Source: Macrostomum lignano
Lineage: Eukaryota
DNA: 64,000 nt
Assembly (NCBI GenBank): GCA_002269645.1
Contig: NIVC01001194.1
Location: 1 to 64,000 of the forward strand
Direction of reading: 5' to 3'
In this document: in pieces, positions 457 to 42,823 of the stretch
How the letters are laid out: every line of letters starts with the position of its first letter
Numbering within the stretch: position 1 is the stretch's first letter
Made by a program: the position numbers and the translations under genes
Notes under the pieces: generated by a model
Databases searched by the model: none
Seen by the model: the letters and a program-made list of their open reading frames with translations, nothing else
Told to the model about the DNA's origin: nothing

Positions 457-843
457 TGGACTGGACTTGAAACTCAAACCTCACCGAATAACCCAGCCCT
501 CGGCAACAGTGAAGATTGCTTGTATTACTTGTGTGCCCCGCAATTGCCATTGTGTATTCTACTCGTATCTTAAGGAAATTTTGCAGCTTAAGACATCAGA
601 CACCTGCGTTTTAATTTGGACTTATATGTAGACTATCTGTGCCTTAAGGGGTTGTGGTTGAAAGAAATAAACGAAATAAAAATAAAGAATTAGAAACAAA
701 GTTAAAACTGAAAGCAAATTTATGGATTGTATTATAGTAGACATAATCAATCAAACTTAATTAAATTTATTATCAAGCAACCAGTTCAGTACAAATGCCA
801 ATATTTAAAAATAAAAAATCACCGGACAAGTCACTCGGGACTC

Positions 844-6594: not shown

Positions 6595-9500
6595 TTATCT
6601 GCTCACGTAGCCTTCGGGAGCTTCAATGCTGCCAGCTGACGAAGGGTCCTCCTGATGCAGAAGCGACTGCGCTGTGTCATAGGGCAGCCCAGCCGAAAGA
6701 AGCTGGAATGTTGAGGAAAGGTGTGTACATTTGGGTGGTGGGGGAGGTGTTACATTGGGGTGGTAGGGGAGGTGTGCACGTTGGGGTGGTAGGGGAGGTG
6801 TGTACATTGGGGTGTAATGGAGGTGTGCACATTGGGGTGGTGGGGGAGGTGTGTGTACATTGGGGTGGTGGGGAGGTGTTACATTGGGGTGGTAGGGGAG
6901 GTGTGCACATTGGGGTGGAAGGGGAGGTGTGTACATTGGGGTGGTAAGGGAGGTGTGCACATTGGGGTGGTGGGGGAGGTGTGTGTACATTGGGGTGGTA
7001 AGGGAGGTGTGCACATTGGGGTGGTGGGGGAGGTGTGTGTACATTGGGGTGGTAGGGGAGGTGTTATATTTGGGTGGTGGAGGAGGTGTGTACATAGGGG
7101 TGGTGGGGGAGGTGTGTACATTGGGGTGGTGGGGGAGGTGTGCACATTGGGTGGTGGGGGAGGTGTGTACATTGGGTGGTAAGGGAGGTGTGCACATTGG
7201 GGTGGTGGGGGAGGTGTGTGTACATTGGGTGGTAAGGGAGGTGTGCACATTGGGGTGGTGGAGGAGGTGTGTACATAGGGGTGGTGGGGGAGGTGTGTAC
7301 ATTGGGTGGTGGGGGAGGTGTGCACATTGGGGTGGTGGGGGAGGTGTGTACATTGGGGTGGTAAGGGAGGTGTGCACATTGGGGTGGTGGGGGAGGTGTG
7401 TGTACATTGGGGTGGTAAGGGAGGTGTGTACATTGGGGTGGTGGGGGAGGTGTGTACATTGGGGTGGTAGGGGAGGTGTGTACATTGGGGTGGTAAGGGA
7501 GGTGTGTACATAGGGGTGGTGGGGGTGTGTACATTGGGGTGGTGGGGGAGGTGTTACATTGGGGTGGTAGGGGAGGTGTGCACGTTGGGGTGGTAGGGGA
7601 GGTGTGTACATTGGGGTGTAATGGAGGTGTGCACATTGGGGTGGTGGGGGAGGTGTGTGTACATTGGGGTGGTAGGGGAGGTGTGCACGTTGGGGTGGTA
7701 GGGGAGGTGTGTACATTGGGGTGTAATGGAGGTGTGCACATTGGGGTGGTGGGGGAGGTGTGCACATTGGGGTGGTGGGGAGGTGTTACATTGGGGTGGT
7801 AGGGGAGGTGTGCACATTGGGGTGGTAGGGGAGGTGTGTACATTGGGGTGGTAAGGGAGGTGTGCACATTGGGGTGGTGGGGGAGGTGTGTGTACATTGG
7901 GGTGGTAAGGGAGGTGTGCACATTGGGGTGGTGGGGGAGGTGTGTGTACATTGGGGTGGTAGGGGAGGTGTGTGTACATTGGGGTGGTAGGGGAGGTGTG
8001 TACATTGGGGTGGTAAGGGAGGTGTGTACATTGGGGTGGTGGGGGAGGTGTGTACATTGGGGTGGCGGGGGAGGTGTGTACATTGGGTGGTAAGGGAGGT
8101 GTGTACATTGGGGTGGTGGGGAGGTGTGTACATTGGGGTGGCGGGGAGGTGTGTACATTGGGGTGGTAGGGGAGGTGTGTACATTGGGGTGGTAAGGGAG
8201 GTGTGTACATAGGGGTGGTGGGGGTGTGTACATTGGGGTGGTAGGGGAGGTGTGCACATTGGGGTGGTAGGGGAGGCGTTTGGGGTGGTAAGGGAGGTGG
8301 GCACATTGGGGTGGTGGGGGAGGTGTGTGTATATTGGGGTGGTAGGGGAGGTGTGTACATTAGGGTGGTGAGGTGTGTTTACATTGGGGTGGTAGGGGAG
8401 GTGTGTACAATGGGGGCGGCAAGGCAAGTATGTACATTGACAACCAGTCAGTATGCTAAAACTGGCTACATAAACTTCATAGCCATGAATTTAAAAGCAA
8501 CTCACCGTTGCGTCGGGTTCAGAAATGTACTTTTGTGGGTCAGACAATGGCACTGCTTCAGCTCGACGCCGCATTGTCCAGCGTCTAACAGCCATAGCAA
8601 CGCCAATTGCAGAGACAATTAAAATTGAACCTACAACAAGCAGAACCAGACGCCAGGATGAAAAACTGGATGAACCTTCAGCCGTTGCAAAAGCAGAAAC
8701 AGGCAAAACTGGACACGCAACACCTCTGCGAATTTGCCAGGTGTCTTTGGAAAATCCTCGATTACCGGTCACGTGACCAGACCGGTTGCAGTCTGCGATA
8801 AAGTTTGTTGAGTTCACCAGGCAGCTGACAAATGTCTGACTGTCAGAGCCACCTGAGCAAGCAGCTGTCAAAGGTGGCAGGTGAATTAAACGATTTGGCA
8901 AACTTGAATTCTCGCCGTAAGATGTGGAGGCGAAGATTGCCAAAGTCGATTCGAACTCGAGGCTGAGCATGGAGGAGTTGAGGACAATGCTGAGATATGA
9001 GGCTGTTGAGAATTTGTCAGAAACAGCCAGCGTTTCACTCTGATTGGTGCCGAGGTTTGCGACTCTGTAGAGCAGGATTCGGCCGTTCCTGCAGCGCCTG
9101 TGCGATTTTGAAGGGGCGATTCTAGAGAGGCGATTCTGAAGAGGCGATTTCAAAATGTAATTTGTGAAAAAGCAAAAAGATGGGAATATCGAAAATAATT
9201 TGTGGGACCAATTGACCACAAATCCTGTAATTTACAGCAGATGATGAAGTTGCAAAAAAACGAAAGCGCTCTCTCACCTGTCGGAGGCTGGGAACACCAG
9301 CTGGCTGGGAGGCAGCAGAAATGCCTCATCAAGCTCCGGGTTGCATGGCAGCCACTCCCCTGATCTGCCGCTACCGCTCGAGTTGTCGCTCCAGTGGCCG
9401 CTGAAGTGCCGCGGTCTGCAGCGGACGGTCACCGAGTACTTCGTGTCGGGACTGACTGCAACGGAGACGGCTGTGGAGTTGGTTGCCAGGCTGCGGCCGT

Positions 9501-12500
9501 CAGACAGAAGCACCTGGTAGCTGTACTCCTGGTTGCCAGGCAACGGTGAGCTTGGTGCCGTCCAGCTGATGTTGAGCTGCTGGGGCTCAAAGTGGAGGGC
9601 CAGCTTCCTGACGGGGCCGGGCTTCTCTGGAATGCATTTGGAGTGATCCCGGTTATGACTGAGTGATCCCGGTGATGACTGAGTGATCCCGGTGATGACT
9701 GAGTCATCCCAGTGCTACCTGAATGATCCCAGTGCTACCTGAATGATCCCAGTGCTGCCTGAATGATCCCAGTGCTACCTGAATGATCCCAGTGCTACCT
9801 GAATGATCGCAGTGCTACCTGAATGATCCCAGTGCTACCTGAATGATCCCAGTGCTAACTTATAAAAGGTCCCTAAGGCATGAGCAACTTACCTTTGTCT
9901 CTAAGGTCAAACACAGAAGACTCATTAACACACCAGCCCAGCTGATTGCACAAGCTCAGAGTCAGCCGGACAATGTCAGGCCCATACTCAGATGACTGGT
10001 GAATCATGCCAAATTCGCAGTAACCAGAGCTGTCGCAGGTGCAGCTGCAATCGGCCTCTTTGCGGGACAAACTGCGAAAATTTATGGAAAAAAAGTTGCT
10101 ATTGTTACTGATTCAGATTGTGCCCTCACTTTATTGTAAGAAAGGCAAAAGTAACAGGAAATATGCATTGAGTAATCAGAAGTAAAGCCAACATTCAGGA
10201 GGAGAGGTATGACAGATTAGCTGAGAGATAATTATTCATAAAAGTAACCGCTTTATCCTTAAAGTGCATTGGAACCTTTAACTGCAGTATCAATATTTAC
10301 AGTGGCGTAGACACTGAGGATCTGGGAGGCTGGCCGAGCAACTGAGGATCTGGAAGGCTGGCCCAGCAACTGAGGATCTGGGAGGCTGGCCCAGCAACTG
10401 AGGATCTGGGAGGCTGGCCCAGCAACTGAGGATCTGGGAGGCAGGCCCAGCAACTGAGGATCTGGGAGGCAGGCCCAGCAACTGAGGATCTGGGAGGCTT
10501 GCCCAGCAACTGAGGATCTGGGAGGCTGGTGGCCCAGCAACTGAGGATCTGGGAGGCAGGCCCAGCAACTGAGGATCTGGGAGGCAGGCCCAGCAACTGA
10601 GGATCTGGGAGGCTTGCCCAGCAACTGAGGATCTGGGAGGCTGGTGGCCCAGCAACTGAGGATCTGGGAGGCTGGTCGAGCAACTGAGGATCTTGGAGGC
10701 TGGTGGCCCAGCAACTGAGGATCTGGGAGGCTGGTGGCCCAGCAACTGAGGATCTGGGAGGCTGGTGGCCCAGCAACTGAGGATCTGGGAGGCTGGTGGC
10801 CCAGCAACTGAGGATCTGGGAGGCTGGCCCAGCAACTGAGGATCTGGGAGGCTGCATAGCAACTGAGGATCTGGGAGGCTGCATAGCAACTGAGGATCTT
10901 GGAGTTTGGCAGTGACCTAGCAACTGAGGGTTTGGGAAAAAAGGCAGTTTTTAATCTTCATCGAATTTAATAAAAATGATTTAGAGTTTGAAACGATAAG
11001 GCATACGGTTTTAAGTAACATGAAAACATAAAAAATTACATACATTTACGTACAGAACACCATAAATAACACACATGACAAAAAAAGCGTGCATCGTTAC
11101 ATATAACACCCATAAATGAATTTTATAAACAAATCGAAATGCCATAACGATAACGATAATAAATAAGCCAAACTATCTATGCTTAACCAACTAGTAAACG
11201 TGATGACATACCTCAGATGCACTGAAAGCACATTATTTGCTTCTGCTCAAACTTCAGCATCAGAACCCGACTACAAACAGGCGTTTAGAATAGCAAAAAA
11301 ATAAATGCCATAATTTATAAATCAATTAAGAGCCTCGTGCAACAGAAAAGCTACAAAAGGCGATTTTAAAAGTGGCAAACTAAGATAAAACAAATACATA
11401 CTACTATAAATAGGGGAAATCAGTAGTATATAGAGAGGACACAGACTGCAAAAATGATATAAAGAACAATCTATAAAGAGTAAATCAGAAACATCGATAC
11501 AACAGCTACCTGACATCATCATTAGTAAAGAAGAGATCTGGCGATGCAGCTGGTTGACATGCCGAGCAGATCTCATCCAATCGAATGATCTGCGTTCTGC
11601 AGGTTAATTCAGTTTCTCTGGTCTAAGTTTAGGAGTTGCTGAGTGCGTGTCACCCTTGGTGCTGGCGCCCCTTGGTGCTGGCGCCCCTTGGTGCTGGGCG
11701 CCCCTTGGTGCTGGCGCCCCTTGGTGCTGGCGCCCCTTGGTGCTGGCGCCCCTTGGTGCTGGCGCCCCTTGGTGCTGGCGCCCCTTGGTGCTGGCGCCCC
11801 TTGGTGCTGGCGCCCCTTGGTGCTGGCGCCCCTTGGTGACTCTATTTTACAGCAAAACTAAATTTACCAAATAACTGAATAATCGCTAAAACTATATGGT
11901 GGATTTCTAACAAAATGGTGTCTATTATAGGATTGCACAGTCTCAACAAGCAAACTGAACTCACAACTGCAGCACGCCCACAGCCAGAGTCAGTCGGCCT
12001 CCAAGACTCGGCGGGACACCTGTGGAGTTGGCGATCGCCGGCAGGCTGGGCCGCACAACCAGAGTGGCGTAGCGCCGGTCCTGCCAGAAGAAATCCACTG
12101 CGGTCGGGACTGGGAGCGCTGGGGGATGGGGAGTGAGGGCGACTGATGAAGCAGCCTGTGCAAGTATGCAGCTGTGCTTCAGTTTCAGCAGATATGACAA
12201 AAGTTTTAAGACAATAGATTTTAAAATCCAATATCCCCCGTTGCTGGGCCAGCCTCCCAGACCCCCAGTTGCTGGGCCAGCCTCCCAGATCCCCAGTTGC
12301 TGGGCCACCAGCCTCCCAGACCCCTAGTTGCTGTGCCAACCTCCCAGATCCCCAGTTGCTGGGCCACCAGCCTCCCAGATCCTCAGTTGCTGGGCCATCA
12401 GCCTCCCAGATCCCTAGTTGCTGGGCCAGCCTTCCAGATCCTCAGTTGCTGGGCCAGCCTTCCAGATCCTCAGTTGCTGGGCCAGCCTCCCAGATCCTCA

Positions 12501-22288: not shown

Positions 22289-23340
22289 ATGGCATTTTCG
22301 TAAGAATTGAAGCTTGAGCACAGGGCAGTGATTAAATTTCTGACTCTGGAGGGCTCAAAGCCTGCTGAAATTCAAAGCCGCATGGCTAGTGTGTACGCTG
22401 ACGCTGCCCCCTCATACGCCACCATCAAGCGCTAGGCAGCCAAGTTCAAGCGTGGCCGCGACTCGCTCGAAGATGACCCCCGATGTGGACGACCCCGGAA
22501 TGCTGTCACCGCCGACAACATCCAGCGCATCCAGGCTCTGGTTGACAGTGACCAGCGGGTGAAAGTCAGGGAACTTGCAGCATACACTAGACTCTCTGAC
22601 CCGCAAGTCATTGAGATCCTGCACCAGCATCTTCATCTGTCGAAGGTTTCTGCCAGATGGATCCCACGAATCTTGACAAGGGACCAAAAGACCGCACGGG
22701 TGCAGTACTCAAAGCTTGTCATGGACTCCTACGATCCGGACCCTGCCAACTTTCTGTCCTGCTGCGTGACCGGGGATGAGACGTGGATCCATCACCACGA
22801 TCCCGAGTCCAAGCAGTGGCTGCCAGTTGGTTCACCTGCACCACTGAAAGCACGGACTGCATGCAGTGCGGGCAAGATTATGCTGACCGTCTTCTGGGAT
22901 GCCAAGGGCCCGCTGCTGCTGGACTTTCTACTGCACAAGCAGACAGTCACAGGCGCCTACTACGCTGACCTGATCGCCCGTCTGCGCGAGGCAATCAAGG
23001 AAAATAGGCGAGGGATGCTGAGCCGAGGTGTTGTGCTGCTGCACAATGCACCGGCCCACACCAGAAGGATTGCCAAGGCTGCTGTCAGTGTCGCAGGGTT
23101 CCGAGAGCTGCCGCACCCGGCCTATTCATCGGACCTGGCCCCGAGCGACTTCCACCTGTTTCCACATCTCAAGCGGGCGCTCCATGGACAGCGATTTGAC
23201 ACTGATGATGCGCTAAAGGATGCTGCAACTGCTTGGTTTGAGGCTGCTCGGTGCAATTCTTCCAGAGTGGCATTGAGGCGCTGCGATCAAGATGCCATAA
23301 GTGCAGCTTGGTTAGGGGAGACTATGTTGAGAAAAGCTGA
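22289..23340 (+). pseudogene. Mariner transposase pseudogene
   Basis: Two in-frame stops in the N-terminal HTH region (MAFS*ELK..., ATIKR*AAK). The second catalytic Asp is missing (LLHNAPAH instead of LLHDNAPAH). Confidence 0.85.
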
Positions 23341-23362
23341 TCTCACTTTGCCCATATCTCCT

Positions 23363-24770
23363 GGGTTAGCGCTACCCAGGTCAAAAGCCATGCAGACCTG
23401 CTCAACACGATCCAAGGCAGAGCGTGTAGGCTCATCTGCAACGCCACCAGGCCCACGCCCTTTGCTGGCATGGGGGCCTTCCTTAATCTTCCGCCTATTG
23501 ACCTCTTCATCAGGGGTGAGGCGGCTAGAACGACGCGGCGTCTAATTGATGCCGGCGTCAAATTCATTTACATGAGAGCACCTGCTAAGCGGAACCTTGT
23601 CCCGCATAGCGATCTGTGCCTCAACTTTCTCAACGAGTGTCAGGCCAATCGCGTTTTCACCGATGGCATTGCCTCAACGCTCAACCTGAGACAGCGCTAC
23701 TCCGTAGCTATCGACTCGCGCGATAACATCAATGACCAATGGAACCCTGGTGAGCTTCATTGCTACACCGACGGTTCTAAGCAGTCAGCCAACACCGGCT
23801 TTGGTGTTGGAATCTTTCTGAACGGGAGGGTCATCGCTACCCACGCTCAATACACTGGGGTCAACTCCAGTGTTTTCCAAAATGAAGTTCTGGCCATCAG
23901 CTCCTGCACTGCAGAGCTTCTCGCCACTGGCGTTACTGGTAAGAACATCATTTTCCATTCGGACAGCCAAGCTGCCTTGCACGCCATCAGTGGCTGCAGC
24001 ACCAACTCTGCTACAGTCCTCGACTGTATCAAACTCCTCAACGTGTTGGGTTCCGCCAACACAATTACCCTTAAGTGGGTTCCGGGGCATGTGGGGATCC
24101 GAGGAAATGAGTTGGCTGACACCCTTGCAAAAGTTGGTGCCTCCGGCTCCTCTCTCGGCCCCGAACCTCTTGTCCCGATTCCTGGCTGTGTCATCGACTC
24201 GCGCATCAAAGCGTGGATCAGGACTCAGCACCGCTCGACTTGGGCGAACCGCACGAACTGCAGGCAATCCAGAGGCGCTGTCCCTCAGCCCTCTCACCAG
24301 CTCCGGAAGCTCCTCTTGCGCCTCTCACGCAGAGACATCCGGGCTGCCATCATGACCCTCTCTGGTCACGGCTGCTTCTCCAGGCACCAGTACCTGCAGG
24401 GCAACGCCACCAACGCCACCTGTAGTTTCTGCAACTCAGGTGACGAAACCGCTGAGCATTTCGTCAGCATCTGTCCCGCCTTCACGCGGGCCAGACTCAC
24501 TTACCTCGGGCCACACACATCTATTACTGAAGCGTGCAAACCCGAAAACTTTAATCAGCTCATGCGTTACCTTCGGGCCACCCGCAGGGCTGAACTCTCC
24601 TTTCCAGAGAGCACCATAGCTGCTGGCGACACTGGGGGACCTCCCTGGGCGGCGCCAACCCTCCGTCCATAGCGACGCGTCGGCCGTTCAGGGACTAGCG
24701 GAATGGGCGCCCGCGCCTTGCCACTGTGTCCCCTCCGGGACAGCCCTGCAGCTAAGTCAAGTAAGTCAAG
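23363..24770 (+). mobile_element. 5'-truncated non-LTR retrotransposon (LINE with RNase H; I/R1/LOA-type group)
   Basis: 14-bp TSD tgcccatatctcct at 23349-23362 and 24771-24784. The open frame has a post-RT region, RNase H (YTDGSK, SVFQNE, HSDSQAAL, WVPGHVGIRGNELAD) and a CCHC knuckle (CSFCNSGDETAEHFVSIC). The tail is short tandem (taagtcaag)n. Confidence 0.92.
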
Positions 24771-24884
24771 TGCCCATATCTCCTCTCTTTCATATTGAGG
24801 CTCAGAACTTTAATAGTGCCCCTCGTAGTTACTCTTAGATTGAGTTTATTGAAAGCTTTTAATAGGAACTCGTCATATACATCT

Positions 24885-25310
24885 CTCTGCCCCCATTGAG
24901 TCTGCCTCTCTGCCCCCATCGAGTCTGCCTCTCTGCCCCCATCGAGTCTGCCTCTCTGCCCCCATCAAGTCTGCCTCTCTGCCCCCATCAAGTCTGCCTT
25001 TCTGCCCCCATCAAGTCTGCCTCTCTGCCCCCATCGAGTCTGCCTTTCTGCCCCCAACGAGTCCGCCTCTCTGCCCCCATCGTGTCTGCCTCTCTGCCCC
25101 TAACGAGTCTGCCTCTCTGCCCCCATCGAGTCTGCCTCTCTGCCCCCAACGAGTCTGCCTCTCTGCCCCCATCGAGTCTGCCTCTCTGCCCCTCTGCCCC
25201 CATCAAGTCTGCCTCTCTGCCCCCATCAAGTCTGCCTCTCTGCCCCCTTGAGTCCGCCTCTCTGCCTTTTGAGTCTGCCTATCTGCCTCCTTAAGGCCGC
25301 CTCTCTGCCC
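24885..25310. repeat. 23-bp minisatellite (gagtctgcctctctgcccccatc)n
   Basis: Directly visible tandem units. Confidence 0.95.
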
Positions 25311-25835
25311 TTATAGCTAACGAAATTTTTGTCAGCTAGTTGGATTTTAAAATAATTTTTGATATAGTATTATTGTTTTCATATAAAATGAACAAATTAC
25401 ACGACTTGTACGAGTATTCCATTTTAGAATTCTAATAAGCATGTGAAAAGCCGTGAAATAAGCATTCGGCAAACTGGTTACCGGTTAACCCTGATACACC
25501 CAGGGAACATGTTAAAGTTTCCACCCCGAAGCCAATGGTTTGAATTATTCTCAGCTCTCAGCTCTAGTTGACGCAATTCCTAATACGCTCGCGGTTCTCG
25601 TCTCAACTGTGCATTATGGAATTTTCGTCACAAGAAACAAGCTTAGGATAGTGAAGAGAAGGATGCCAAAATGTCATTAACAAAAAAATACATTATGCAT
25701 ATTATGCTTTTAATTATTGATTTTAAGCAATTATATGCAACTCCTGAATTAGTGACCACAATGCAGGATGAAGACCAGCATCCTGACCGCTATTTGAATC
25801 GTTGATGATAGAAATTTTTGTCAGTGAACAGAAAT

Positions 25836-27680
25836 TCACAATCGCAGCGCAATGCGACGACTCAACAAATAAGTTGCGATAAAAAGTGAAGCCACACGTA
25901 ACTCCAACTCATCCGCATCCTCCATTTGAGCCACATCCCGGATCCAGTCTTCACTTATATAGTCTACTACTCCAGGCAGGTTCAGGCGAAGTATATTTAG
26001 CACGGCATCAAAGTTCACGTAAGCTCGGTTGTTTTGCATCCGGAAAGAAAAGAACTCCAAATCAACAAACTGGCTTGCAAATGGCAGTCTAGGCTGCTCG
26101 TCAAACTTAAAGCAGAACTTCCACGCAGAGTCTCGGCTCCTCAGGTGCTGCATCACGAAGTCCGCAGTCGCCTCACTCGCCGATCTCTCAGCGGACCAGT
26201 CGATGCCTCTACTCGCCCTGAACTGCCTGCAGTCGCTCACGACTTTCGCTGCAGCCTCTCTGTCGCCGAACTTCAGGCAGCTCAGCGCCCTCAGAGACTC
26301 TCGCGCCGAGCGGGCGCAGTCTGGCAGCTTGCCGATCAGCTCCGAGAGACGCTGTCGGGACTCTGGGCTTCGGTCTCGGTCCGACACACGGAGCACCGAC
26401 TCTCTCACGACGTCGTAGATCTCGTGGTACTCGATTTTCTTCGCTTGTGACACAGGTACATCAGCTTCAATGATAGGCAGAATGAGGAACGGGTGGAAGT
26501 GGAATCGGCCCGAGTCGGTGACGGGTCGCAGGCTGTCCTCGAACTCCAGCAGCAGCTCAGGCAGCCTATCGATCACATCTCTCACTGCATCGGCTGCCTG
26601 ACTCAAAGCTTCGCTCACCTTCTCAGCCGATGTGCTGGTGTCCACGCCTCTCAGGTACACAGCGGCATCGCGAAGGAAGAAGTGGTCCATGATCTTGGCG
26701 TCAGGTCCGCCTGATCTGCAGTCGCTCTCAAGCATCTGCAGCGAGCGTCTCGCGAGACTCACGAGATTCCGAGCGTCGCTCCACTGCTCGGCCGGTGTCT
26801 CCTCCAGCATTCGGAACGCGATGGTCTTTGCGTGATACGACTTGAAGCCGTCGTGTCGGACGGCCTTCTTCAGCAGCCACTTGAGCGTGACGAACAGCTG
26901 GCCCTGCAGAGTGGTGAGACTCCGCAGCAGCCGCCTCTCCAGGAAGCTGGTGCTCACTCGGAGCTGCTCGCCCTCCTTTCCGGGAGCAGCTGCGTGCACC
27001 ACGTGACAGGGCGATGAGGCAGAGGTGAGGAGATGCTGGAGCGACTGCAGCACGGACTGGGGGATGCTTGAGTCGGAGACTCGGTTCTTGAGTAGCGGCG
27101 CGATGGGCGGGTAGCAGCAGAGGCGTCGGGCGTCAACGTTGTCAAAGGCCGGTCTCAGCCCAAACCTATCCAGTGGCACCGATGGCTTGGATGCTGCAAC
27201 CGTTGATTCGGAACAGTAGATCGAGTTTTCAAAGCGCAATGCGCTAGTAATGCAGTTGACATATGTAATAAATTTTACACAGTAAAATATTTGTACCTAT
27301 CTTATGTCAGGACATATAGGAAATCGCTCTCACCGTATCCGGGATACAACACGTGTCCATTGCTGTACTTCACTGTATCAAGCTCCGGTACATCGCACTT
27401 GCACAGATCTCTCAGATGGATGTTGCTTCCTGAGACTAGATGCAACACATCGATGTCGGAGTCAGGGTCAGTTCTGCCATCCAGAGTAGCCAGGCTGTTG
27501 CCCCAGCCCTCAGAGAAGCTACCCACAACGAATAAATCATTATGGTCAAGTCTTCTCCTCAGAAGGCCCTGCAGCGTATCAGCCACGGCGCTCTGCAAGG
27601 CGGCTCTGGAGTCCACGAATCCCGACTGATTGAGTGCTTGGTGCAGCTGCTGGCTCAGCTCTGCGTCGCTGCGGGTGACT
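25836..27680 (-). CDS. Mab-21/cGAS-like nucleotidyltransferase domain (exons 2-3)
   Basis: GSFSEG activation loop, DSDID catalytic pair and a candidate third Asp (NVDAR). [10 protein letters not shown] resembles the WRxSFSxxE motif. The Mab-21 C-terminal helical lobe shows FKSYHAKT...W...IMDHFF. Confidence 0.88.
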
Positions 27681-30600
27681 CTGAGGGTTAAGCACAACGG
27701 GATCTCTTTGTCTAGTTAGTTACACATATATATCGGACTTTTTCGTTTTGTACTAAAAGGTAAAAGTTATACATGCAAAAAAGCGTGGCAGCCAGCGCAT
27801 TTAATACATCATAGCATATGTAGCTAAATAAAAGCATTAGTCAACCAGAACTTTTACCGATGGCAAAGCATAGAAAGACGTTTTAAAAAATCATGAAACA
27901 CCGCTTTACAAGCTCAACAGAAGACAAACCCAACCATAAAAATAATGATCTTAGCAACATTGATTTACCTTTTAGAAACGGTCGGCATTGAAAGTTGCCA
28001 GTAACCATTACTCATAGCTTGAATCAGCATCCGAGAGGCCACTTTATTTCCGATTATCCGAGATCGATTCAATGCGGCCTTAAGAATATCATGGTGAGAC
28101 TCCGCGTTACAGGCGTGAAGAAGCAGATCCAAGACCAGAATGTGGCCATTCTGTACCACAACGTCAAGAGGTGAGCTGCCACCAACTGTCTTAAAACTGA
28201 CGTTGGCCTCTGCTTTAATGAGTGCCTCTATCACTTTGTGATGACCATTCTGTGATGCAACGTAGAGAGGTGACCCGCCATTGTTTCGCTGAAGATTGAC
28301 GTCTGCTTGCGCTTTAATGAGTGACTCAATTACTTTGTGATGACCATTTTGTGATGCAACGTACAGAGCTGATCCGCCATGGTTTTCTTGAAGATTGACG
28401 TCTGCTTGTGCTTTAACGAGTGAGTCAATTACTTTGTGATGACCAGTCTGTGATGCAATGAAGAGAGGTGATTCACCAGTCTTTAATCGAAGATTGACGT
28501 CTGCTTGTGCTTTAATGAGTGAGTCAACTACTTTTAGATGACCATTTTGTGATGCAACGAAGAGAGGTGATCCGCCATGGCTTTGTTGAAGATTGACGTC
28601 GGCTTGTGCTTTGATGAGTGACTCAATTACTTGGTGATGCCCATTCTGTGATGAAAAAAATAGAGGCGATTCGCCTTGTTTTGCTTGAAGATTGACGTCA
28701 GCTTGTGCTTTGATGAGTGATTTAATTACTTTCTGATGACCCATTCTAGATGCACACAGGAGAGGCGACTCACCAGTGCTTCGTTGAAGATTGACGTTGG
28801 CTTGTGCTTTGACGAGCAAGTCAAGGACTTTGTGATGGCCATTTTGCGATGCAATGTAGAGAGGTGACTCGCCAGTATTTACTTGAAGATTGACGTCTGC
28901 TTGTGCTACGACGAGGGAGTCAATTACCTTTTCATGGCCATTTGCAGACGCCATGTAGAGAGGTGACTCGCCAGTGTTTCGTTGAATATTGACTTCAGCT
29001 TGTGCTTGGATGAGTGACTCAATTACTTTGTGATGACCTTTTGCAGCTGCAATGTACAGAGGTGACTCGCCAGTGCTTCGTTGAAGATTGACGTCGGCTT
29101 GTGCTTTGATGAGTGACTTAATTACGTTGTGATGACCGTTCGCAGTTGCAACGTAGAGAGGTGAATTGCCAGTGTTTGCTTGAAGATTGACGTCGGCCTG
29201 TGCTTTGATGAGTGACTCAATTACTTTGTGATGACCATTCTGGGATCCAATGTAAAGAGGTGACTCACCAGTGACGAGTTGAATATTGACTTCTGCTTGT
29301 GCTTTGATGAGTGACTCAGTTACTTTGTGATGACCTTTTATAGATGCAATGTGTAGAGGTGAGTAGCCTTGGTGCTGTTGAAGATTGACGTCAACTTGTG
29401 CTTTAATGAGTGACTCAATTACTTTGTGATGACCATTTTGTGATGCAATGTAGAGAGGCGAGCATCCTTCAAAGTCTTGAAGATTGACGTCGGCTTGTGC
29501 TTTAATGAGTGACTCAATTACTTTGTGATGACCATTCTGTGTTGCAATGTAGAGAGGCGAGCATCCTTCAAAGTCTTGAAGATTGACGTCGGCTTGTGCT
29601 TTAATGAGTGACTCAATTACTTTTTGATGACCATTCTGTGATGCAATGTAGAGAGGCGAGCATCCTTCAACGTCTTGAAGATTGACGTCTGCTTGTGCTA
29701 CGACGAGGGAGTCAATTACTTTTTCATGGTCATTTGCAGACACCATGAAGAGAGGTGACTCGCCAGTGTTTCGTTGAATATTGACTTTAGCTTGTGCTTT
29801 GATGAGTGCCTCAATTACTTCGTGATGACCTTTTGCAGCTGCAATGTACAGAGGTGAATTGGTAGTGTTTGCTTGAAGATCGACGTCGGCCTGTGCTTTG
29901 ATGAGTGACTCAATTATTCTACGATGACCATTCTGTGATGCAATGTAGAGAGGTGACTCACCAGTGTTGAGTTGAATATTGACTTCTGCTTGTGCTTTGA
30001 TGAGTGACTCAATTATTTTACGATGACCATTCTGTGATGCAATGTACAGAGGTGACTCACCAGTGTTGAGTTGAATATTGACTTCTGCTTGTGCTTTGAT
30101 GAGTGCCTCAATTACTTTGTGATGACCATTCTGTGATGCAATGCAGAGAGGCGAGCATCCTTTAAAGTCTTGAAGATTGACGTCAACTTGTGCTTTAATG
30201 AGTGACACAATTACTAGGTGATAGCCATTCTGTGATGCAATGTTCAGAGGTGAGCAGCCTTCAAAGTCTTGAAGATTGACGTCGGCTTGTGCTTTGATGA
30301 GTGATTCAACTACTTTGTGATAACCATTCTGTGATGCAATGTAGAGAGGCGAGCATCCTTCAAGGTCTTGAAGATTGACGTCGGCTTGTGCTTTGATTAG
30401 TGACTCAATTACTTTGTGATGACCATTTTGTGATGTAATGTAGAGAGGCGAGAAGCCTTCAAAGTCTTGAAGATTGACGTCCGCTTGTGCTTTGATGAGT
30501 GACTCAATTACTTTGTGATGACCATTCTGTGATGCAATATGGAGAGGTGCGTAACCAGTGTTTGCTTGAAGATTGACGTCGGCCTGTGCTTTGATGAGTG

Positions 30601-31042
30601 ACTCAATTACTTTGTGATGACCATTATATGATGCAATGTAGAGAGGTGAGTAGCCTTCGGAGTCTTGAAGATTGACGTCGGCTTGTGCTTTGATAAGTAA
30701 GTCAACAACTTCGTCATGTCCTAGCTGGGATGCAATTAGCAGTGCTGTAATTCCGTCTTTAGTTTTTTCATCAAGATTCGCTTTTGCTGCAATTAGTTTT
30801 GTTAATATTTCGTGTCTACCAAACATACTTGCCAGCATCGCGAGCGTCAAATTCTTTCCAGATAATTTTACAACCTTGTCGACACTTCTCGCCCTGGAGA
30901 CAAATCTATGGATCCTGTTTAGGTCGTTCATAATTATCGCCTCAATGAGAGTTTCATCCAAGAGCTCTGCGTCAGATCCGGATTCGAACACGGGCATGCA
31001 GAAGGCACCTACGAAATTCAGCAGCCATTTCAGGAATCGCAT
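25836..31042 (-). CDS. Ankyrin-repeat / Mab-21 (cGAS-like receptor, cGLR) fusion protein, ~1,590 aa
   Basis: Exon 31042-27969 (ankyrin array; donor AAAAG|GTAAAT, phase 2) joins exon 27680-27334 (acceptor gtgcttaaccctcag|A, phase 2) and exon 27193-25836 (phase 1). All joins are in frame. The supplied ORF start at 31096 is GTG; the first ATG is at 31042. Confidence 0.75.
27969..31042 (-). CDS. Ankyrin repeat exon: ~25 highly similar 33-aa repeats plus 3-4 divergent capping repeats
   Basis: Consensus [33 protein letters not shown], visible at DNA level as a 99-bp tandem repeat, with one uninterrupted 3-kb reading frame. Confidence 0.95.
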
Positions 31043-31377
31043 CGCAGAGGATTTTATTTTTTTTCTCGTTTCTGAATCGCGTTTATACGTCTTCACTTGT
31101 GTGCGCTGGGTATGCTTTGCGACTGGAATGATGCCAGATTTTTACAAGAGATGCAAGTGAGTTTCTGTCTGTTAGATGAGGTTACCCAGTCTTTTTTAAG
31201 ACTTGATTGATCTGAAGCAGCAGTTCGGGGTGTTAGTCTCAAGCAACAAATTCACTATTGTATTTTTAAGAGTATGCGAAATGCGTTTTAACTTTGGGCC
31301 TGTGCCACCGCTTTCCTAAGCTTTTTTGTACATCTTTTCATAATTAAAAAACCTTTAATGTTGTTTGTGTGCTGTTG

Positions 31378-31436
31378 GCAGTGGTATTAGTAGTAGCAGT
31401 AGTAGCAGCAGTAGTAGTAGTAGTAGTAGTAGTAGC

Positions 31437-31467
<31 letters not shown>

Positions 31468-31468
31468 A
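31378..31468. repeat. (TAG)n microsatellite
   Basis: Directly visible. Confidence 0.95.
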
Positions 31469-31784
31469 AACTAATACTAAATGCTAAAGAAAAAATGATC
31501 GAATTCAGATTCCTTGAACATAAAATAAGATCTGTACTGACAGTCATACAAAATGACGTTTATTTACTTTTAAAAAACAAAGCAAGACAGTCTTTCAGGC
31601 AATGGAAACGCAAAATTATCAGCAGGGGGTCGTCAGGAATGAATGATGGCACATTCTGCCAGTTGGTGATGCGAGTCGGGCTCCCTAATTACACATAAAT
31701 GCGACAATACTGCTCAGGTCATTATTTAGGTCTGTACTGAGTAAATAAACACAAAATGCTCACAATTAGTATTCATGCCGCAGC

Positions 31785-34700
31785 TTATTTCTCATCCTTG
31801 CACTCGGCAATGGCACTGACGCCTCCGCCCGACCGCTTCTTCTGTGGCATCTCCTCGCCGAATGCCTCCAGCTCCTGCGGGATGCTCAGCATGCCATCAG
31901 CCAGGCTGTTGTCCCAGGTGTCTATGGTGAAATCCGACCCGGCGAACTCGTCTCCGCCCTGCTTGTTCTGCGTAGGCGGATTGCAACTGGTTCTGTTGCT
32001 TTTCGATACATATCGGTAGGTGAGTAAAATGGGTCAGGATCACACAGAATCGGTCAGGATCACACAGAATCGGTCAGGGATCACACAGAATCGGTCAGGA
32101 TCACACAGAATCGGTCAGGGATCACACAGAATCGGTCAGGATAACACAGAATTGGTCAGGATCACACAGAATCGGTCAGGGATCACACAGAATCGGTCCG
32201 GGATCACACAGAATCAGTCAGGGATCACACAGAATCGGTCAGGGATCGCACAGAATCAGTCAGGGATCACACAGAATCGGTCCGGGAGCACACAGAATCG
32301 GTCCGGGATCACACAGAATCAGTCAGGGATCACACAGAGAATCGGTCAGGGATCACACAGAATCAGTCAGGGATCACACAGAATCGGTCCGGGAGCACAC
32401 AGAATCGGTCAGGGATCACACAGAATCGGTCAGGATCACACAGAATCGGTCGGGATCACACAGAATCGGTCAGGGATCACAGAATTGGTCAGGATCACAC
32501 AGAATCGGTCAGGGATCACAGAATCAGTCAGAATCACACAGAATCGGTCAGGGATCACACAGAATCGGTCAGGATCACACAGGATCGGTCAGGATCACAC
32601 AGAATCGGTCAGGGGCACACAGAATCGGTCAGGGATCACACAGAATCGGTCAGGATCACACAGAATCGGTCAGGATCACACAGAATCGGTCAGGATCACA
32701 CAGAATCGGTCAGGATCACACAGAATCAGTCAGGATCACACAGAATCGGTCAGGATCACACAGAATCGGTCAGGATCACACAGAATCGGTCAGGGATCAC
32801 AGAATTGGTCAGGATCACACAGAATCGGTCAGGGATCACACAGAATCGGTCAGGATCACACAGAATCGGTCAGGATCACACAGAATCGGTCAGGATCACA
32901 CAGAATCGGTCAGGGATCACAGAATTGGTCAGGATCACACAGAATCGGTCAGGGATCACAGAATCGGTCAGAATCACACAGAATCGGTCAGGATAACACA
33001 GAATCGGTCAGGGATCACACAGGATCGGTCAGGATAACACAGAATCGGTCAGGGATCACACAGGATCGGTCAGGGGCACACAGAATCGGTCAGGGATCAC
33101 ACAGGATCGGTCAGGATCACACAGAATCGGTCAGGGATCACACAGGATCGGTCAGGGATCACGCAGAATCGGTCAGGGATCACACAGAATCGGTCAGGAT
33201 CACACAGAATCGGTCAGGATCACACAGAATTGGTCAGGATCACACAGAATCGGTCAGGGATCACATAGAATCGGTCAGGAATCACACAGAATCGGTCCGG
33301 GATCACACAGAATCGGTCCGGATCACACAGAATCGGTCAGGATCACACAGAATCGGTCAGGATCACACAGAATCGGTCAGGATCACACAGAATCGGTCAG
33401 GATCACACAGAATCGGTCAGGATCACACAGAATCGGTCAGGGATCACAGAATCGGTCAGGATCACACAGAATCGGTCAGGGATCACAGAATCGGTCAGAA
33501 TCACACAGAATCGGTCAGGATAACACAGAATCGGTCAGGGACCACACAGGATCGGTCAGGATAACACAGAATCGGTCAGGGATCACACAGAATCGGTCAG
33601 GGACCACAGAATTGGTCAGGATCACACAGAATCGGTCAGGGATCACAGAATCGGTCAGAATCACACAGAATCGGTCAGGATAACACAGAATCGGTCAGGG
33701 ATCACACAGGATCGGTCAGGATAACACAGAATCGGTCAGGATCACACAGAATCGGTCAGGGGCACACAGAATCGGTCAGGATCACAGAATCGGTCAGGAT
33801 AACACAAAATCGGTCAGGGATCACACAGAATCGGTCAGAATCACACAGAATCGGTCAGGATAACACAGAATCGGTCAGGATCACACAGAATCGGTCAGGA
33901 TCACACAGAATCGGTCAGAATCACACAGAATCGGTCAGGATCACAGAATCGGTCAGGATCATACCATGATAAAGAATCGGTCAGGATCACACAGAATTGG
34001 TCAGGATCACACAGAATCGGTCAGGATCACACAGAATTGGTCAGGATCACACAGAATCAGTCAGGGATCACACAGAATCGGTCAGGATCACACAGAATCA
34101 GTCAGGGATCACACAGAATCGGTCCGGGATCACACAGAATCGGTCAGGGATCACAGAATCGGTCAGGATCACACAGAATCGGTCAGGGATCACAGAATCG
34201 GTCAGAATCACACAGAATCGGTCAGGATAACACAGAATCGGTCAGGGATCACACAGGATCGGTCAGGATAACACAGAATCGGTCAGGGATCACACAGGAT
34301 CGGTCAGGGGCACACAGAATCGGTCAGGGATCACACAGGATCGGTCAGGATCACACAGAATCGGTCAGGGATCACACAGGATCGGTCAGGGATCACGCAG
34401 AATCGGTCAGGGATCACACAGAATCGGTCAGGATCACACAGAATCGGTCAGGATAACACAGAATTGGTCAGGATCACACAGAATCGGTCAGGGATCACAC
34501 AGAATCGGTCAGGAATCACACAGGATCGGTCAGGGATCACACAGAATCCGTCAGGGATCACACAGAATCGGTTAGGATCACACAGAATCGGTCAGGATCA
34601 CACAGAATCGGTCAGGGGCACACAGAATCGGTCAGGATCACACAGAATTGGTCAGGATCACACAGAATCGGTCACGATCACACAGAATCGGTCAGGATCA

Positions 34701-40700: not shown

Positions 40701-42823
40701 TCAACCACTTGCGCAAGTCGCACAATCTTCAAAACCAACTCTCTGTACAATAAACATGTACATAGTCCCCACCTCAATTTTCAAGTGAATTCATACATAT
40801 ACGCCTGCTCAGCCCCCAGTCAAAGTCAGAGACTCCTTAACTGTACAGCTGCAGCCATGGAATTGAATCGTGAGCAGAATCGGCTACTAATTTGGTACTG
40901 CCACAAGCGAAAGCTCACGGCGCTTGAGACTCATGCCGAGCTACTAGCAACATTGGAGGCTCAAGCGCCGTCATATGCTACGGTTAAACGCTGGTACGCG
41001 AGTTCCAGGCCGGCAGGACCAGCTTTTCTGACGACCCCCGGCCCGGGAGACCTCCGACAGCAGTGACGGAGGAAAACATCGCTGCAGTGCAGGAGCTGAT
41101 TCATCAGGATCCGCGAATCACCACGGACATGCTAGCTATGAATGTCGGCATTGGATCGGCAGCGGTCGATACGATTCTACACGATCACCTGAGAGTCAGG
41201 AAGCTTTGTGCCCGATGGATACCCCACATCCTGACAGATGCTCAAAAACAGGCCCGCATGGAGTTCTGTCAGTTTCTCATCAATCGATATGAGCACGGGA
41301 GCCATCAGCGCCGCTCTGAGGTCATCACTGGTGATGAGACGTTTCTGTATCATTTTGACGTCGAGACAAAGCGCAGCAGTGCAGAGTGGGTGCCGGAAGG
41401 TGGTCAACGACCCCTGAAAGCAAGGCGGTCCCGGTCCCAGGGCAAGCGGATGTTTGCCATCTTCTTCGACTCACAAGGCGTGGTGGCGATGGTGAAGCTG
41501 GAGGGTCAAGCTACAGTCACTGCTCGATGGTACACTGAAGAGTGCTTGCCAGTCGTGATCGACAGCGTGACCCAGAGGGCGCCAAGGACGGGAATGCGAG
41601 GGCGGAAGCTTCACCATGACAACGCCCCCGCCCACACGGCTGCTGCAACTCGAGCGTTCCTGGACCAAGAGGGCATTTCAACGCTACCACACCCGGCCTA
41701 CTCACCAGACCTCGCCCCCTGCGACTTCTGGCTCTTTCCAGAAATCAAAAAGTCGCTTAGGGGGCGCAGGTTTCAGTCCGACGAGGAGCTGGAGCAGGCG
41801 GCGAAGGAGGCGATTGACGGCATCCCAATTGAAGACTTCCAGGGCTTGATGAACAAGTGGCTCGGACGAGCGCACAAGTGTTTGCAGTTCCGGGGAGCCT
41901 ACTTTGAAGGATTGTAATAGAAAAGTTTGGCAAAATTAACTTTAAATAGTCGAATTGCAAAACTTTTAGAGTATCCCTCGTATAATGGGGAATCTATGGG
42001 GAAATAATGGAGAATTTATTGGGGAATCTAATGGGGAATCTATTGAAGAATCTAATGGGGAATCTAACGCGGAAACTTTTGGGGATTCTTAAGGAACTTT
42101 CAGCGAGATTCTTATGGGGATTCTCGGGGAGATTCTTATGGGGATTCCTATGGTGACTCTTATGTGGATTCTAATGGGGAAATTTATGGAGAATCTTACG
42201 GGGAACCTAATAGTGATTTCTATGGGGACTCTTGGAGATTCTTAAATATGGGGATTCTTATAGGAAATTTTAAGAAATCTTATGGGGAATATTATGGGGG
42301 TATCTATGAGTAATTTTATGGAGATCTTATAGAAATATGTTGGGGATTCTTTTAGGTATTTTCATGGCAATTTTCATAAGAATTCCTATGACAGCCTATC
42401 GAAGACTTATTAGTAAAAACACAATAATAACGACAAGTTTAATCCAGACCAACCATTATCCAATTTAAAAGTGACGCCCTCCCCAGCGCCACCCTGGCTG
42501 TCTCCGCGGGTTGTGCCATAGACCTGGCCATCCCGAGGCCCGCCAAAAAAGCGGCCAGTCCAGTGCACCGTCACCCAGTCTCCTGGATTCGGCCTCAACA
42601 AGCTGGCATCGGCGGCTGGCAATTGTTCTGTATTACTAACAGTAGTAGCACCGCCAGTAGTAGAAGACTCTTCTCTGTTTAAAATCAATTTGAAGACGCC
42701 ACCATCCTCAGTCAGAGGTACAGCTTCTGGAGGCACGTTATTCAATGCTGGCAGAGGCTGCGGCTGCTGTGCGACCCCAGCAGTCGTGCTCTGCTCTTTG
42801 CTGTTATCAGCTGAAGAGGTCAT
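31785..42823 (-). CDS. FKBP4: FKBP4/FKBP5 (FKBP52/51/59)-type immunophilin: two FKBP-type PPIase domains plus TPR domain, ~562 aa
   Basis: Exons 42823-42454, 40149-39853, 38904-38462, 37472-37077 and 31967-31785, in phase. Motifs EDGGVFKLIL, GDWVTVHWTG, GPNADVVMDVELIDW.GDDIS..KNGSLLR, VPPNANLVYQIELLDF, and TPR LNLALACLK...NEKALYRRGQA. FKBP4 versus FKBP5 cannot be resolved. Confidence 0.85.
32030..37045. repeat. 5-kb intronic satellite of 18-21-bp units (ggatcacacagaatcggtca)n
   Basis: Fills the last FKBP intron and is the source of the RITQNRSG ORFs. Confidence 0.97.
37560..38412. repeat. ~22-23-bp minisatellite (ccccatagagaatcgcccctag)n, left arm of an inverted pair
   Basis: Reverse complement of the 38965-39710 unit. 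Confidence 0.95.
38965..39710. repeat. ~23-bp minisatellite (gtcaggggcgattctctatggg)n, right arm of an inverted pair
   Basis: Reverse complement of the 37560-38412 unit. Confidence 0.95.
40674..41980 (+). mobile_element. Full-length mariner transposon (1307 bp) in FKBP intron 1; DD34D transposase with one frameshift
   Basis: TIRs cgagggatactccaaaagttttgcaattc / gaattgcaaaacttttagagtatccctcg (1 mismatch), flanked by TA. The transposase starts at ATG ~40857. Motifs ARWIPHILT, ITGDET, HHDNAPAH and YSPDLAPCD, with 34 residues between the last two Asp. A 1-nt deletion near 40995 splits the ORF. Confidence 0.95.
41985..42400. repeat. Degenerate (ggggaatctaat/ggggattctt)-type repeat, continuous with 40300-40665 across the mariner insertion
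   Basis: Similar low-complexity units on both sides of the element. Confidence 0.75.

Follow-up and report, generated by a model that had tools for sequence, protein, structure and literature searches.

Do three neighbouring minus-strand open reading frames (ORFs) of the flatworm Macrostomum lignano encode separate proteins, or are they parts of a single protein in which a giant ankyrin array is joined to a cGAS-like nucleotidyltransferase, and what would such a protein do? The question is raised by positions 25836–31042 of a 64,000-nucleotide stretch (positions 1–64,000 of contig NIVC01001194.1, assembly GCA_002269645.1; hereafter, the window), for which an earlier reading of the DNA letters (the original prediction) had proposed an in-frame fusion acting as an immune sensor. 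The three ORFs lie at 27965–31096 (1043 aa), 27302–27697 (131 aa), and 25836–27239 (467 aa), and are exons of one three-exon gene. Its product is a 1592-aa fusion consisting of an N-terminal leader, 28 ankyrin repeats, a Mab-21/cGAS-like nucleotidyltransferase (cGLR) domain with conserved catalytic residues, and an orphan C-terminal domain. We consider it probable that the protein is cytosolic, and that its cGLR is catalytically competent and switched by a ligand, with the ankyrin array serving as the recognition or regulatory surface.

A three-exon gene joining ankyrin repeats to a nucleotidyltransferase

The gene is arranged as follows, where G53–S54, D75, D77, D133, the loop 54–76, and residue 244 (here and below) are numbered within the enzyme part and ankyrin residues within the full protein.

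27969–31042, minus strand: exon 1, residues 1–1024 and two bases of codon 1025, encoding the hydrophobic leader, then the ankyrin array, then a short linker
27681–27968, minus strand: intron 1, 288 nt, phase 2, GTAAAT...CTAAC...CCCTCAG
27334–27680, minus strand: exon 2, encoding the spine helix, strand β1 with G53–S54, the enlarged activation loop, and strand β2 with D75-I-D77 (secondary structure from the AlphaFold2 model)
27194–27333, minus strand: intron 2, 140 nt, phase 1, GTGAGA...GTTGCAG
25836–27193, minus strand: exon 3, encoding the remaining part of the nucleotidyltransferase core together with the Mab-21 C-terminal helical lobe and the orphan C-terminal domain, with the stop codon at 25836–25838

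Both introns have GT–AG borders and are in frame. At the first junction, the donor AAAAG/GTAAAT (the slash marks the junction; last exon base 27969, phase 2) is overlapped by the TAA stop codon of the ankyrin ORF (27965–27967). The acceptor, CCCTCAG/A, has CTAAC 39 nt upstream, the next exon runs from 27680, and the spliced peptide ...PTVSKR/VTRSDAEL continues in the nucleotidyltransferase frame. The original prediction, in which the ankyrin ORF ends at a phase-2 donor and the nucleotidyltransferase frame is resumed 288 nt further on at an acceptor with a branch point, is confirmed in these respects. It had also stated, giving no position, that the following junction is in phase; we located this junction at 27334/27193, where GGATACG/GTGAGA (last exon base 27334) is joined to GGTTGCAG/CA (exon start 27193) with the frame open. 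A nearer AG was considered as the second acceptor (exon start 27243) and rejected, being out of frame with 24 stops; the chosen start at 27193 matches the UniProt paralogue described below. The spliced coding sequence extends from the ATG at 31040–31042, picked by aligning the N-termini of the complete paralogues P0002 and P0174, over 4779 nt, and encodes 1592 aa with a single terminal stop. This ATG coincides with the end coordinate given in the original prediction.

The same junctions are found in public sequences. Both junction peptides (SKR/VTRSD and PGY/ASKP) are present in a 678-aa M. lignano fragment that is 99% identical to the window protein (P0001; UniProt A0A1I8IE30), and the first is present in a partial 1460-aa protein that is ~89% identical (P0170; GenBank PAA80295.1, BOX15_Mlig023319g1). 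The PGY/AS junction is also kept at the genomic loci of paralogues P0002 and P0009. The BOX15 GenBank annotation of M. lignano goes back to an RNA-seq transcriptome that was built with genome guidance, so that transcripts of the fused form exist for PAA80295.1, the nearest GenBank copy.

These observations bear directly on the alternative that the locus holds two separate genes, that is, an ankyrin protein ending at the TAA of 27965–27967 and an independent nucleotidyltransferase gene, or that the fusion is a prediction chimera. The overlap of stop codon and donor would fit two genes, because retention of intron 1 stops translation at codon 1026 and unspliced RNA would thus yield a 1025-aa ankyrin-only protein; several enzyme-only fragments are also deposited in UniProt. 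However, no in-frame Met precedes residue 244 in the enzyme exons, so that the enzyme domain can be made only within the fusion; both introns are canonical and keep the phase; and the same junction recurs in the transcript-derived GenBank models and in many paralogues. We therefore regard two genes as highly improbable, and treat the three exons as a single gene hereafter.

The cGAS-like catalytic domain and its family

Residues 1026–1325 (~300 aa) constitute the Mab-21/cGAS-like nucleotidyltransferase domain, which carries the following elements.

27449–27523, minus strand: active-site segment, with GS at 27518–27523 and DID at 27449–27457, aligned to G212–S213 and E225/D227 of human cGAS (hcGAS)
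27141–27143, minus strand: D133, the third catalytic Asp, within AFDNV, aligned to D319 of hcGAS
26823–26960, minus strand: Mab-21 hallmark motifs, RVSTSFLE (26937–26960) and SYHAKT (26823–26840)

The identity of the domain, as claimed in the original prediction, is borne out by profile comparison. In hhalign, the enzyme part matched an alignment of human and mouse cGAS and three cnidarian cGLRs (sequences from Table S3 of Li et al. 2023) with a probability of 97.4% and an E-value of 4.5e-11 over 271 columns. In addition, a profile of 12 paralogues matched the cGAS chains in the Protein Data Bank (PDB) at an E-value of 9e-6, the match lying over the helical lobe. GSFSEG, DSDID, and AFDNV are all present, and hhalign pairs G53–S54 with G212–S213, D75 with E225, D77 with D227, and D133 with D319 of hcGAS. 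The domain thereby contains the complete active-site pattern of a Pol-β-type core, i.e., G[GS] on the activation loop, [DE]h[DE] on strand β2, and a third acidic residue on a strand nearby. The C-terminal helical lobe of the Mab-21 type (PF20266, with SYHxKT and WRLSFSxxE-type motifs) is likewise present: RVSTSFLE pairs with WRLSFSxxE and SYHAKT with SYHVKT of cGAS, and several paralogues have precomputed PF20266 hits. A poly(A) polymerase or TUTase reading was considered and set aside, because the cGAS alignment spans both lobes.

The structure predicted with AlphaFold2 (mean pLDDT, 73) places the active-site residues on the expected strands (E49–54, E77–89, and E131–140). All 50 matches listed by Foldseek against the PDB are MB21D2, cGAS, or MAB21L1 (best E-value, 1.8e-4; probability, 1.00); the model lends moderate support to a bilobed cGAS-like fold. 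The best match is human MB21D2 (PDB 7lt1), an orphan cGLR that is also without a known ligand. MB21D2 differs in lacking an ankyrin array; its TM-score is no higher than 0.42, and among the cGLRs of the PDB it is cGAS that is favoured in profile searches.

In comparison with vertebrate cGAS and Drosophila cGLR1, the domain shares the bilobed Mab-21 fold, the GS activation loop, the acidic triad, and the WRLSFS/SYHxKT motifs at an identity of ~15–19%, but it has an insertion of 9–10 residues in the activation loop, and the protein adds ~1000 aa of N-terminal ankyrin repeats and a C-terminal domain of 267 aa. The features of vertebrate-type cGAS, namely, the Zn thumb H(X5)CC(X6)C and a basic DNA-binding surface, were not found: the segment of the Zn thumb is a 12-column gap in the hhalign alignment, and the enzyme core has a calculated pI of 7.8 and the core together with the C-terminal domain one of 6.2, near-neutral to acidic rather than basic. 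Nucleic-acid-sensing cGLRs have a pI of >8.5, according to Li et al. 2023 (PMC9980059). Because of the missing Zn thumb and the core pI of 7.8, the domain was filed as a cGLR and not as cGAS. Proteins of the MAB21L1/2 type are marked by the absence of a functional acidic active site; the domain was not filed with them, because its acidic triad and GS motif are present and conserved. As a side observation, six family-specific His/Cys residues (H88, C93, C95, H109, C141, and H179; 27353–27418 and codons 27117–27119 and 27003–27005, minus strand) have no counterpart in cGAS and are each kept in 65–80 of 81 family domains; they may form a metal-binding site that replaces the missing Zn thumb.

The paralogue survey proposed with the original prediction revealed a large family in M. 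lignano. All 35 homologues of the enzyme part were from M. lignano or were MetaClust entries. When the family profile was searched against 1.84 billion representative proteins, 732 proteins were retrieved at E ≤1e-3 and 84 clusters at E ≤1e-30, and every close family member that was looked up is from M. lignano. Among the outsiders with a source name, Mab-21 proteins of annelids and bivalves come nearest (E ~1e-15 to 1e-10); both Pfam Mab-21 models are passed by ten hits from the distant range (E ~1e-14 to 1e-10), one of which is the bivalve hit. The gene is one member of a large lineage-specific expansion of ankyrin-fused cGLRs (ANK-cGLRs). Across 81 family domains (from 79 proteins), GS and DxD are each kept in 78–79, and the third position is Asp in 75 and Glu in one. 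In 73 of them, no part of the G-S...D-x-D...D signature is lost, which argues for retained catalysis. The catalytic residues pointed out in the original prediction (GS..EG, DxD, and a third Asp) are those that align with cGAS and are kept across the family.

This conservation is the principal reason why we regard as quite improbable a non-catalytic Mab-21 scaffold, i.e., a pseudoenzyme of the MAB21L1 or MiD49/51 type that engages in protein–protein interactions only. Such a scaffold would be compatible with the occurrence of MAB21L1 among the fold matches, with the enlarged and poorly modelled activation loop, and with the absence of M. lignano enzymes from the published active cGLRs. On the other hand, the signature is retained down to ~30–40% identity, the conserved residues align exactly with the catalytic residues of cGAS, and Li et al. 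(PMC9980059) set Mab21L1/2/3, which have no predicted active site, apart from the cGLRs. A catalytically competent cGLR therefore remains the preferred assignment.

Neither the architecture nor the family is new, contrary to what the original prediction implied; they and near-identical sequences are already known. Li et al. 2023 (PMC9980059) report that 87% of cGLRs are stand-alone and ~13% have extra domains, some of them tetratricopeptide (TPR) or ankyrin repeats. Their Table S2 gives Ank_2 hits on M. lignano PAA accessions, and their Table S3 lists five cloned M. lignano proteins, among them PAA86972.1, PAA45980.1, and PAA57558.1; M. lignano members are thus handled as cGLRs in that study. 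The close relatives PAA80295, PAA65921, and PAA51373 did not turn up in the table text that was searched, but two of those files were truncated, so that this negative carries no weight. The same source states that 'Most platyhelminthes' are without cGLRs beyond Mab21-like proteins. Near-identical and other giant fusion proteins are also deposited in GenBank and UniProt, the giant ones being PAA80295.1 (1460 aa), PAA93879.1 (1575 aa; named 'Mab-21-like HhH/H2TH-like domain-containing protein'), and PAA93319.1 (2111 aa). The paralogues A0A1I8IE30, PAA80295.1, PAA65921.1, PAA93879.1, PAA86972.1, PAA45980.1, and PAA57558.1 share the architecture and the catalytic motif with the window protein, at identities such as 99% (A0A1I8IE30), 89% (PAA80295.1), and 38% (PAA86972.1). 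They agree with it in the junctions that were compared (the first in A0A1I8IE30 and PAA80295.1; the second in A0A1I8IE30, P0002, and P0009). The window copy differs from them in its longer array and shorter tail, and its 99% match is only the 678-aa fragment. Ankyrin- or TPR-fused cGLRs of other animals, such as those of Stylophora pistillata (PMC9980059), likewise combine a cGLR core with a repeat module proposed to interact with ligands; in contrast, the M. lignano clade belongs to another lineage, and possesses a C-terminal domain and an enlarged GS–DxD loop of its own.

No further paralogues were found within the window. Another locus, that of a paralogue (NIVC01001606.1), contains the enzyme exons at least three times, at 775–1704 (minus strand), and 8190–11161 and 22619–25442 (plus strand). 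In the model PAA65921.1 (871 aa) from this locus, the ankyrin exon is joined across ~16 kb to the second downstream enzyme copy, with the first one skipped; this long join could be a mis-join or alternative splicing. Another M. lignano entry, P0036 (UniProt A0A1I8GXZ3, 1346 aa), carries a tandem pair of complete cGLR cores without ankyrin motifs, and could represent either a double-domain protein like OAS2 or neighbouring genes that were merged.

The ankyrin array as a candidate recognition surface

The regions flanking the enzyme are as follows.

30986–31042, minus strand: hydrophobic, Cys-containing N-terminal leader, 19 residues
28100–30871, minus strand: 28 ankyrin repeats, residues 58–981, in an unbroken 33-aa register
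25839–26639, minus strand: family-specific C-terminal domain, 267 aa, α/β, acidic, pI 5.3

The array consists of tandem 33-residue units matching the ankyrin consensus, with E-values of 1.6e-168 over 24 stretches for Pfam Ank and 2.1e-199 for Ank_2. Its 28 units agree with the ~28 repeats counted in the original prediction; degenerate capping repeats stand at both ends, one at the start and two at the end. Tandem Repeats Finder gave a 99-bp period with 25.3 copies and an 81% match, a divergence sufficient to argue against an assembly artefact. Repeat numbers vary widely among paralogues (~3 in P0002, 11 in P0006, and 28 in the window protein; by motif count, 25 in the window protein, 20 in PAA80295.1, and 17 in PAA93879.1), and the window copy has the longest array among the members in which repeats were counted. 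As a separate observation, the repeat pair at residues 388–453 closely resembles that at residues 652–717 (...AAAKGHH... followed by ...SAN[DG]...; ~28892–29879, minus strand), and this likeness points to growth of the array through a higher-order block duplication of ~8 repeats, rather than unit by unit.

In the 25 central repeats, positions 1, 2, 3, and 5 are the most variable (entropy of 2.0–2.5 bits), followed by positions 9, 10, 13, and 17, whereas G4, P7, L8, G15, L23, A26, and V30 are nearly invariant. In ankyrin proteins and designed ankyrin binders, positions at the hairpin tip and in the first helix form the usual binding face. The variable residues of the window protein would lie on this face, which makes the solenoid the best candidate for a recognition, regulatory, or autoinhibitory surface. 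By analogy with other cGLRs, we propose that the enzyme is held inactive until a ligand binds and switches it on, with the enlarged activation loop as the likely switch. A nucleic acid is probably not the ligand; such a trigger is less likely because the pI values of 7.8 and 6.2 fall below those of the known sensors and the Zn thumb is lacking. The centre formed by D75, D77, and D133 would use nucleoside triphosphates to produce a nucleotide second messenger that, by analogy with the rest of the family, is probably a cyclic dinucleotide, and the messenger would then act on a downstream receptor in M. lignano.

Several points weigh against this reading. At the level of the single sequence, the domain scores below the Pfam gathering thresholds (14 bits for PF20266, with a cut-off of 24.1, and no PF03281 hit), and searches with the single ORFs and the spliced domain gave sub-threshold hits to Mab-21_C (E 0.04–0.05) and an MTPAP-like model (E 0.02). 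Profiles were needed for the enzyme assignment for this reason, and the failure at the Pfam gathering score is a detection limit rather than a structural feature. The Foldseek TM-scores are 0.42–0.54, obtained on a model with a pLDDT of 73. The loop between GS and DxD is 9–10 residues longer than that of cGAS, with a pLDDT of <50 at residues 54–76. The variability of the ankyrin repeats could be mere drift after recent tandem duplication. No member of the ANK-cGLR family has a reported activity, product, or ligand. Three of the five M. lignano constructs of PMC9980059 (entries 89–91) start at the enzyme domain without the ankyrin repeats, and, judging from the empty note column of Table S3, they are not among the 15 active enzymes characterised there; construct 89 (PAA86972.1) is 38% identical to the window protein (E 2e-63). 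Finally, Wu et al. 2014 report the loss of cGAS and STING from flatworms, in a study that predates the annotated M. lignano assembly.

A different division of labour, in which the cGLR is active but the ankyrin repeats provide localisation, scaffolding, or oligomerisation (such as a tether to the cytoskeleton or a membrane) and the ligand binds the core or the C-terminal domain, is unlikely in our view. Paralogues whose enzyme domains are similar differ in repeat number from ~3 to 28, and some members are recorded without ankyrin repeats, although several of those are fragments. The leader is common only to the closest paralogues (P0002, P0174, and P0170), although P0042 and P0018 have a similar one. 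It could serve as a signal-like peptide, as an anchor in the membrane, or as a site of palmitoylation, and its hydrophobic, Cys-containing character suggests membrane targeting. The C-terminal domain is conserved across paralogues and has no assigned role. Against this division stand the concentration of ankyrin variability on the canonical binding face, the array register kept unbroken over ~2.8 kb, and the lack in the enzyme core of the basic charge of nucleic-acid sensors, so that recognition by the ankyrin surface is preferred.

For the C-terminal domain, the AlphaFold2 model has a pLDDT of 77.6. No Pfam hit was obtained, and no known fold was accepted from the Foldseek search of the PDB, the best hit being at an E-value of 0.98 and the hits being scattered TPR-like helices. 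A weak phmmer stretch raised the candidate of a second, degenerate cGLR domain in an OAS2-like arrangement, which was rejected at an hhalign probability of 1.4%. The C-terminal tail of the window protein is ~40 aa shorter than that of most paralogues. The last ~26 aa of P0170 (PAA80295.1) match the window (25836–25990, minus strand) in another reading frame, so that the P0170 copy or its model is frameshifted near the 3′ end; the window copy keeps the family-conserved DWIRDV...EDADE motif.

An active enzyme could also serve a non-immune role, producing a nucleotide signal or nucleotidylating a target in development, the germline, or stem cells of this flatworm, which regenerates. The sequence has no tie to infection, flatworms are reported to lack STING, NF-κB, and IRF3, and members of the MAB21 family have developmental roles. 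We nonetheless consider this role improbable: the large lineage-specific expansion (84 clusters at E <1e-30), the tandem clustering, and the variable repeat surface resemble immune receptor families, a resemblance by analogy only. In a flatworm lineage commonly portrayed as having lost cGAS–STING, a more specific extension of the ligand-switched enzyme would make the ANK-cGLR family a repertoire of receptors for protein ligands, in which the variable concave ankyrin face recognises a pathogen or damage-associated protein and releases the autoinhibited core, and the signal passes to a receptor other than STING, possibly with participation of the C-terminal domain; in this full form, we hold it to be rather improbable.

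Genomic setting and meaning of the ANK-cGLR family

The gene lies in a repeat-rich neighbourhood, where several minisatellites occur alongside an RNase H ORF and ORFs for mariner-type DDE transposases, which fits a genome of which more than half is repetitive. Minisatellites and microsatellites give rise here to long spurious ORFs.

22559–23545 and 41063–41917, plus strand: mariner-type DDE transposase ORFs (Pfam Transposase_1/DDE_3)
23470–24672, plus strand: ORF of 400 aa that contains an RNase H domain and probably is what remains of a retroelement, immediately 3′ of the gene
24896–25294: repeat yielding 'SLPLCPHRVCLSAP' units, a spurious ORF
31344–31547: (ACN)n tract, ~300 bp upstream of the gene start
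32020–33564, plus strand: 7-aa-period repeat (ITQNRSG/SHRIGQG), a spurious 514-aa ORF

The locus itself adds little to what is public: it offers a clean and intact full-length example whose array is very long and whose exon coordinates are exact. Its interest lies in the family. The cGLRs with a known trigger all sense double-stranded nucleic acids, and the trigger of the many inactive ones is posed as a question in PMC9980059; M. lignano is not among the species in the STING table of that study (Table S5). Ankyrin-fused cGLRs are natural candidates for protein-sensing cGLRs, and M. lignano, a transgenic and RNAi-tractable animal with dozens of them, is a reasonable place to seek a non-nucleic-acid trigger and STING-independent signalling. 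If the reading of the family as a repertoire for protein ligands were true, it would amount to a cGLR pathway in which both the trigger and the output are of a new kind.

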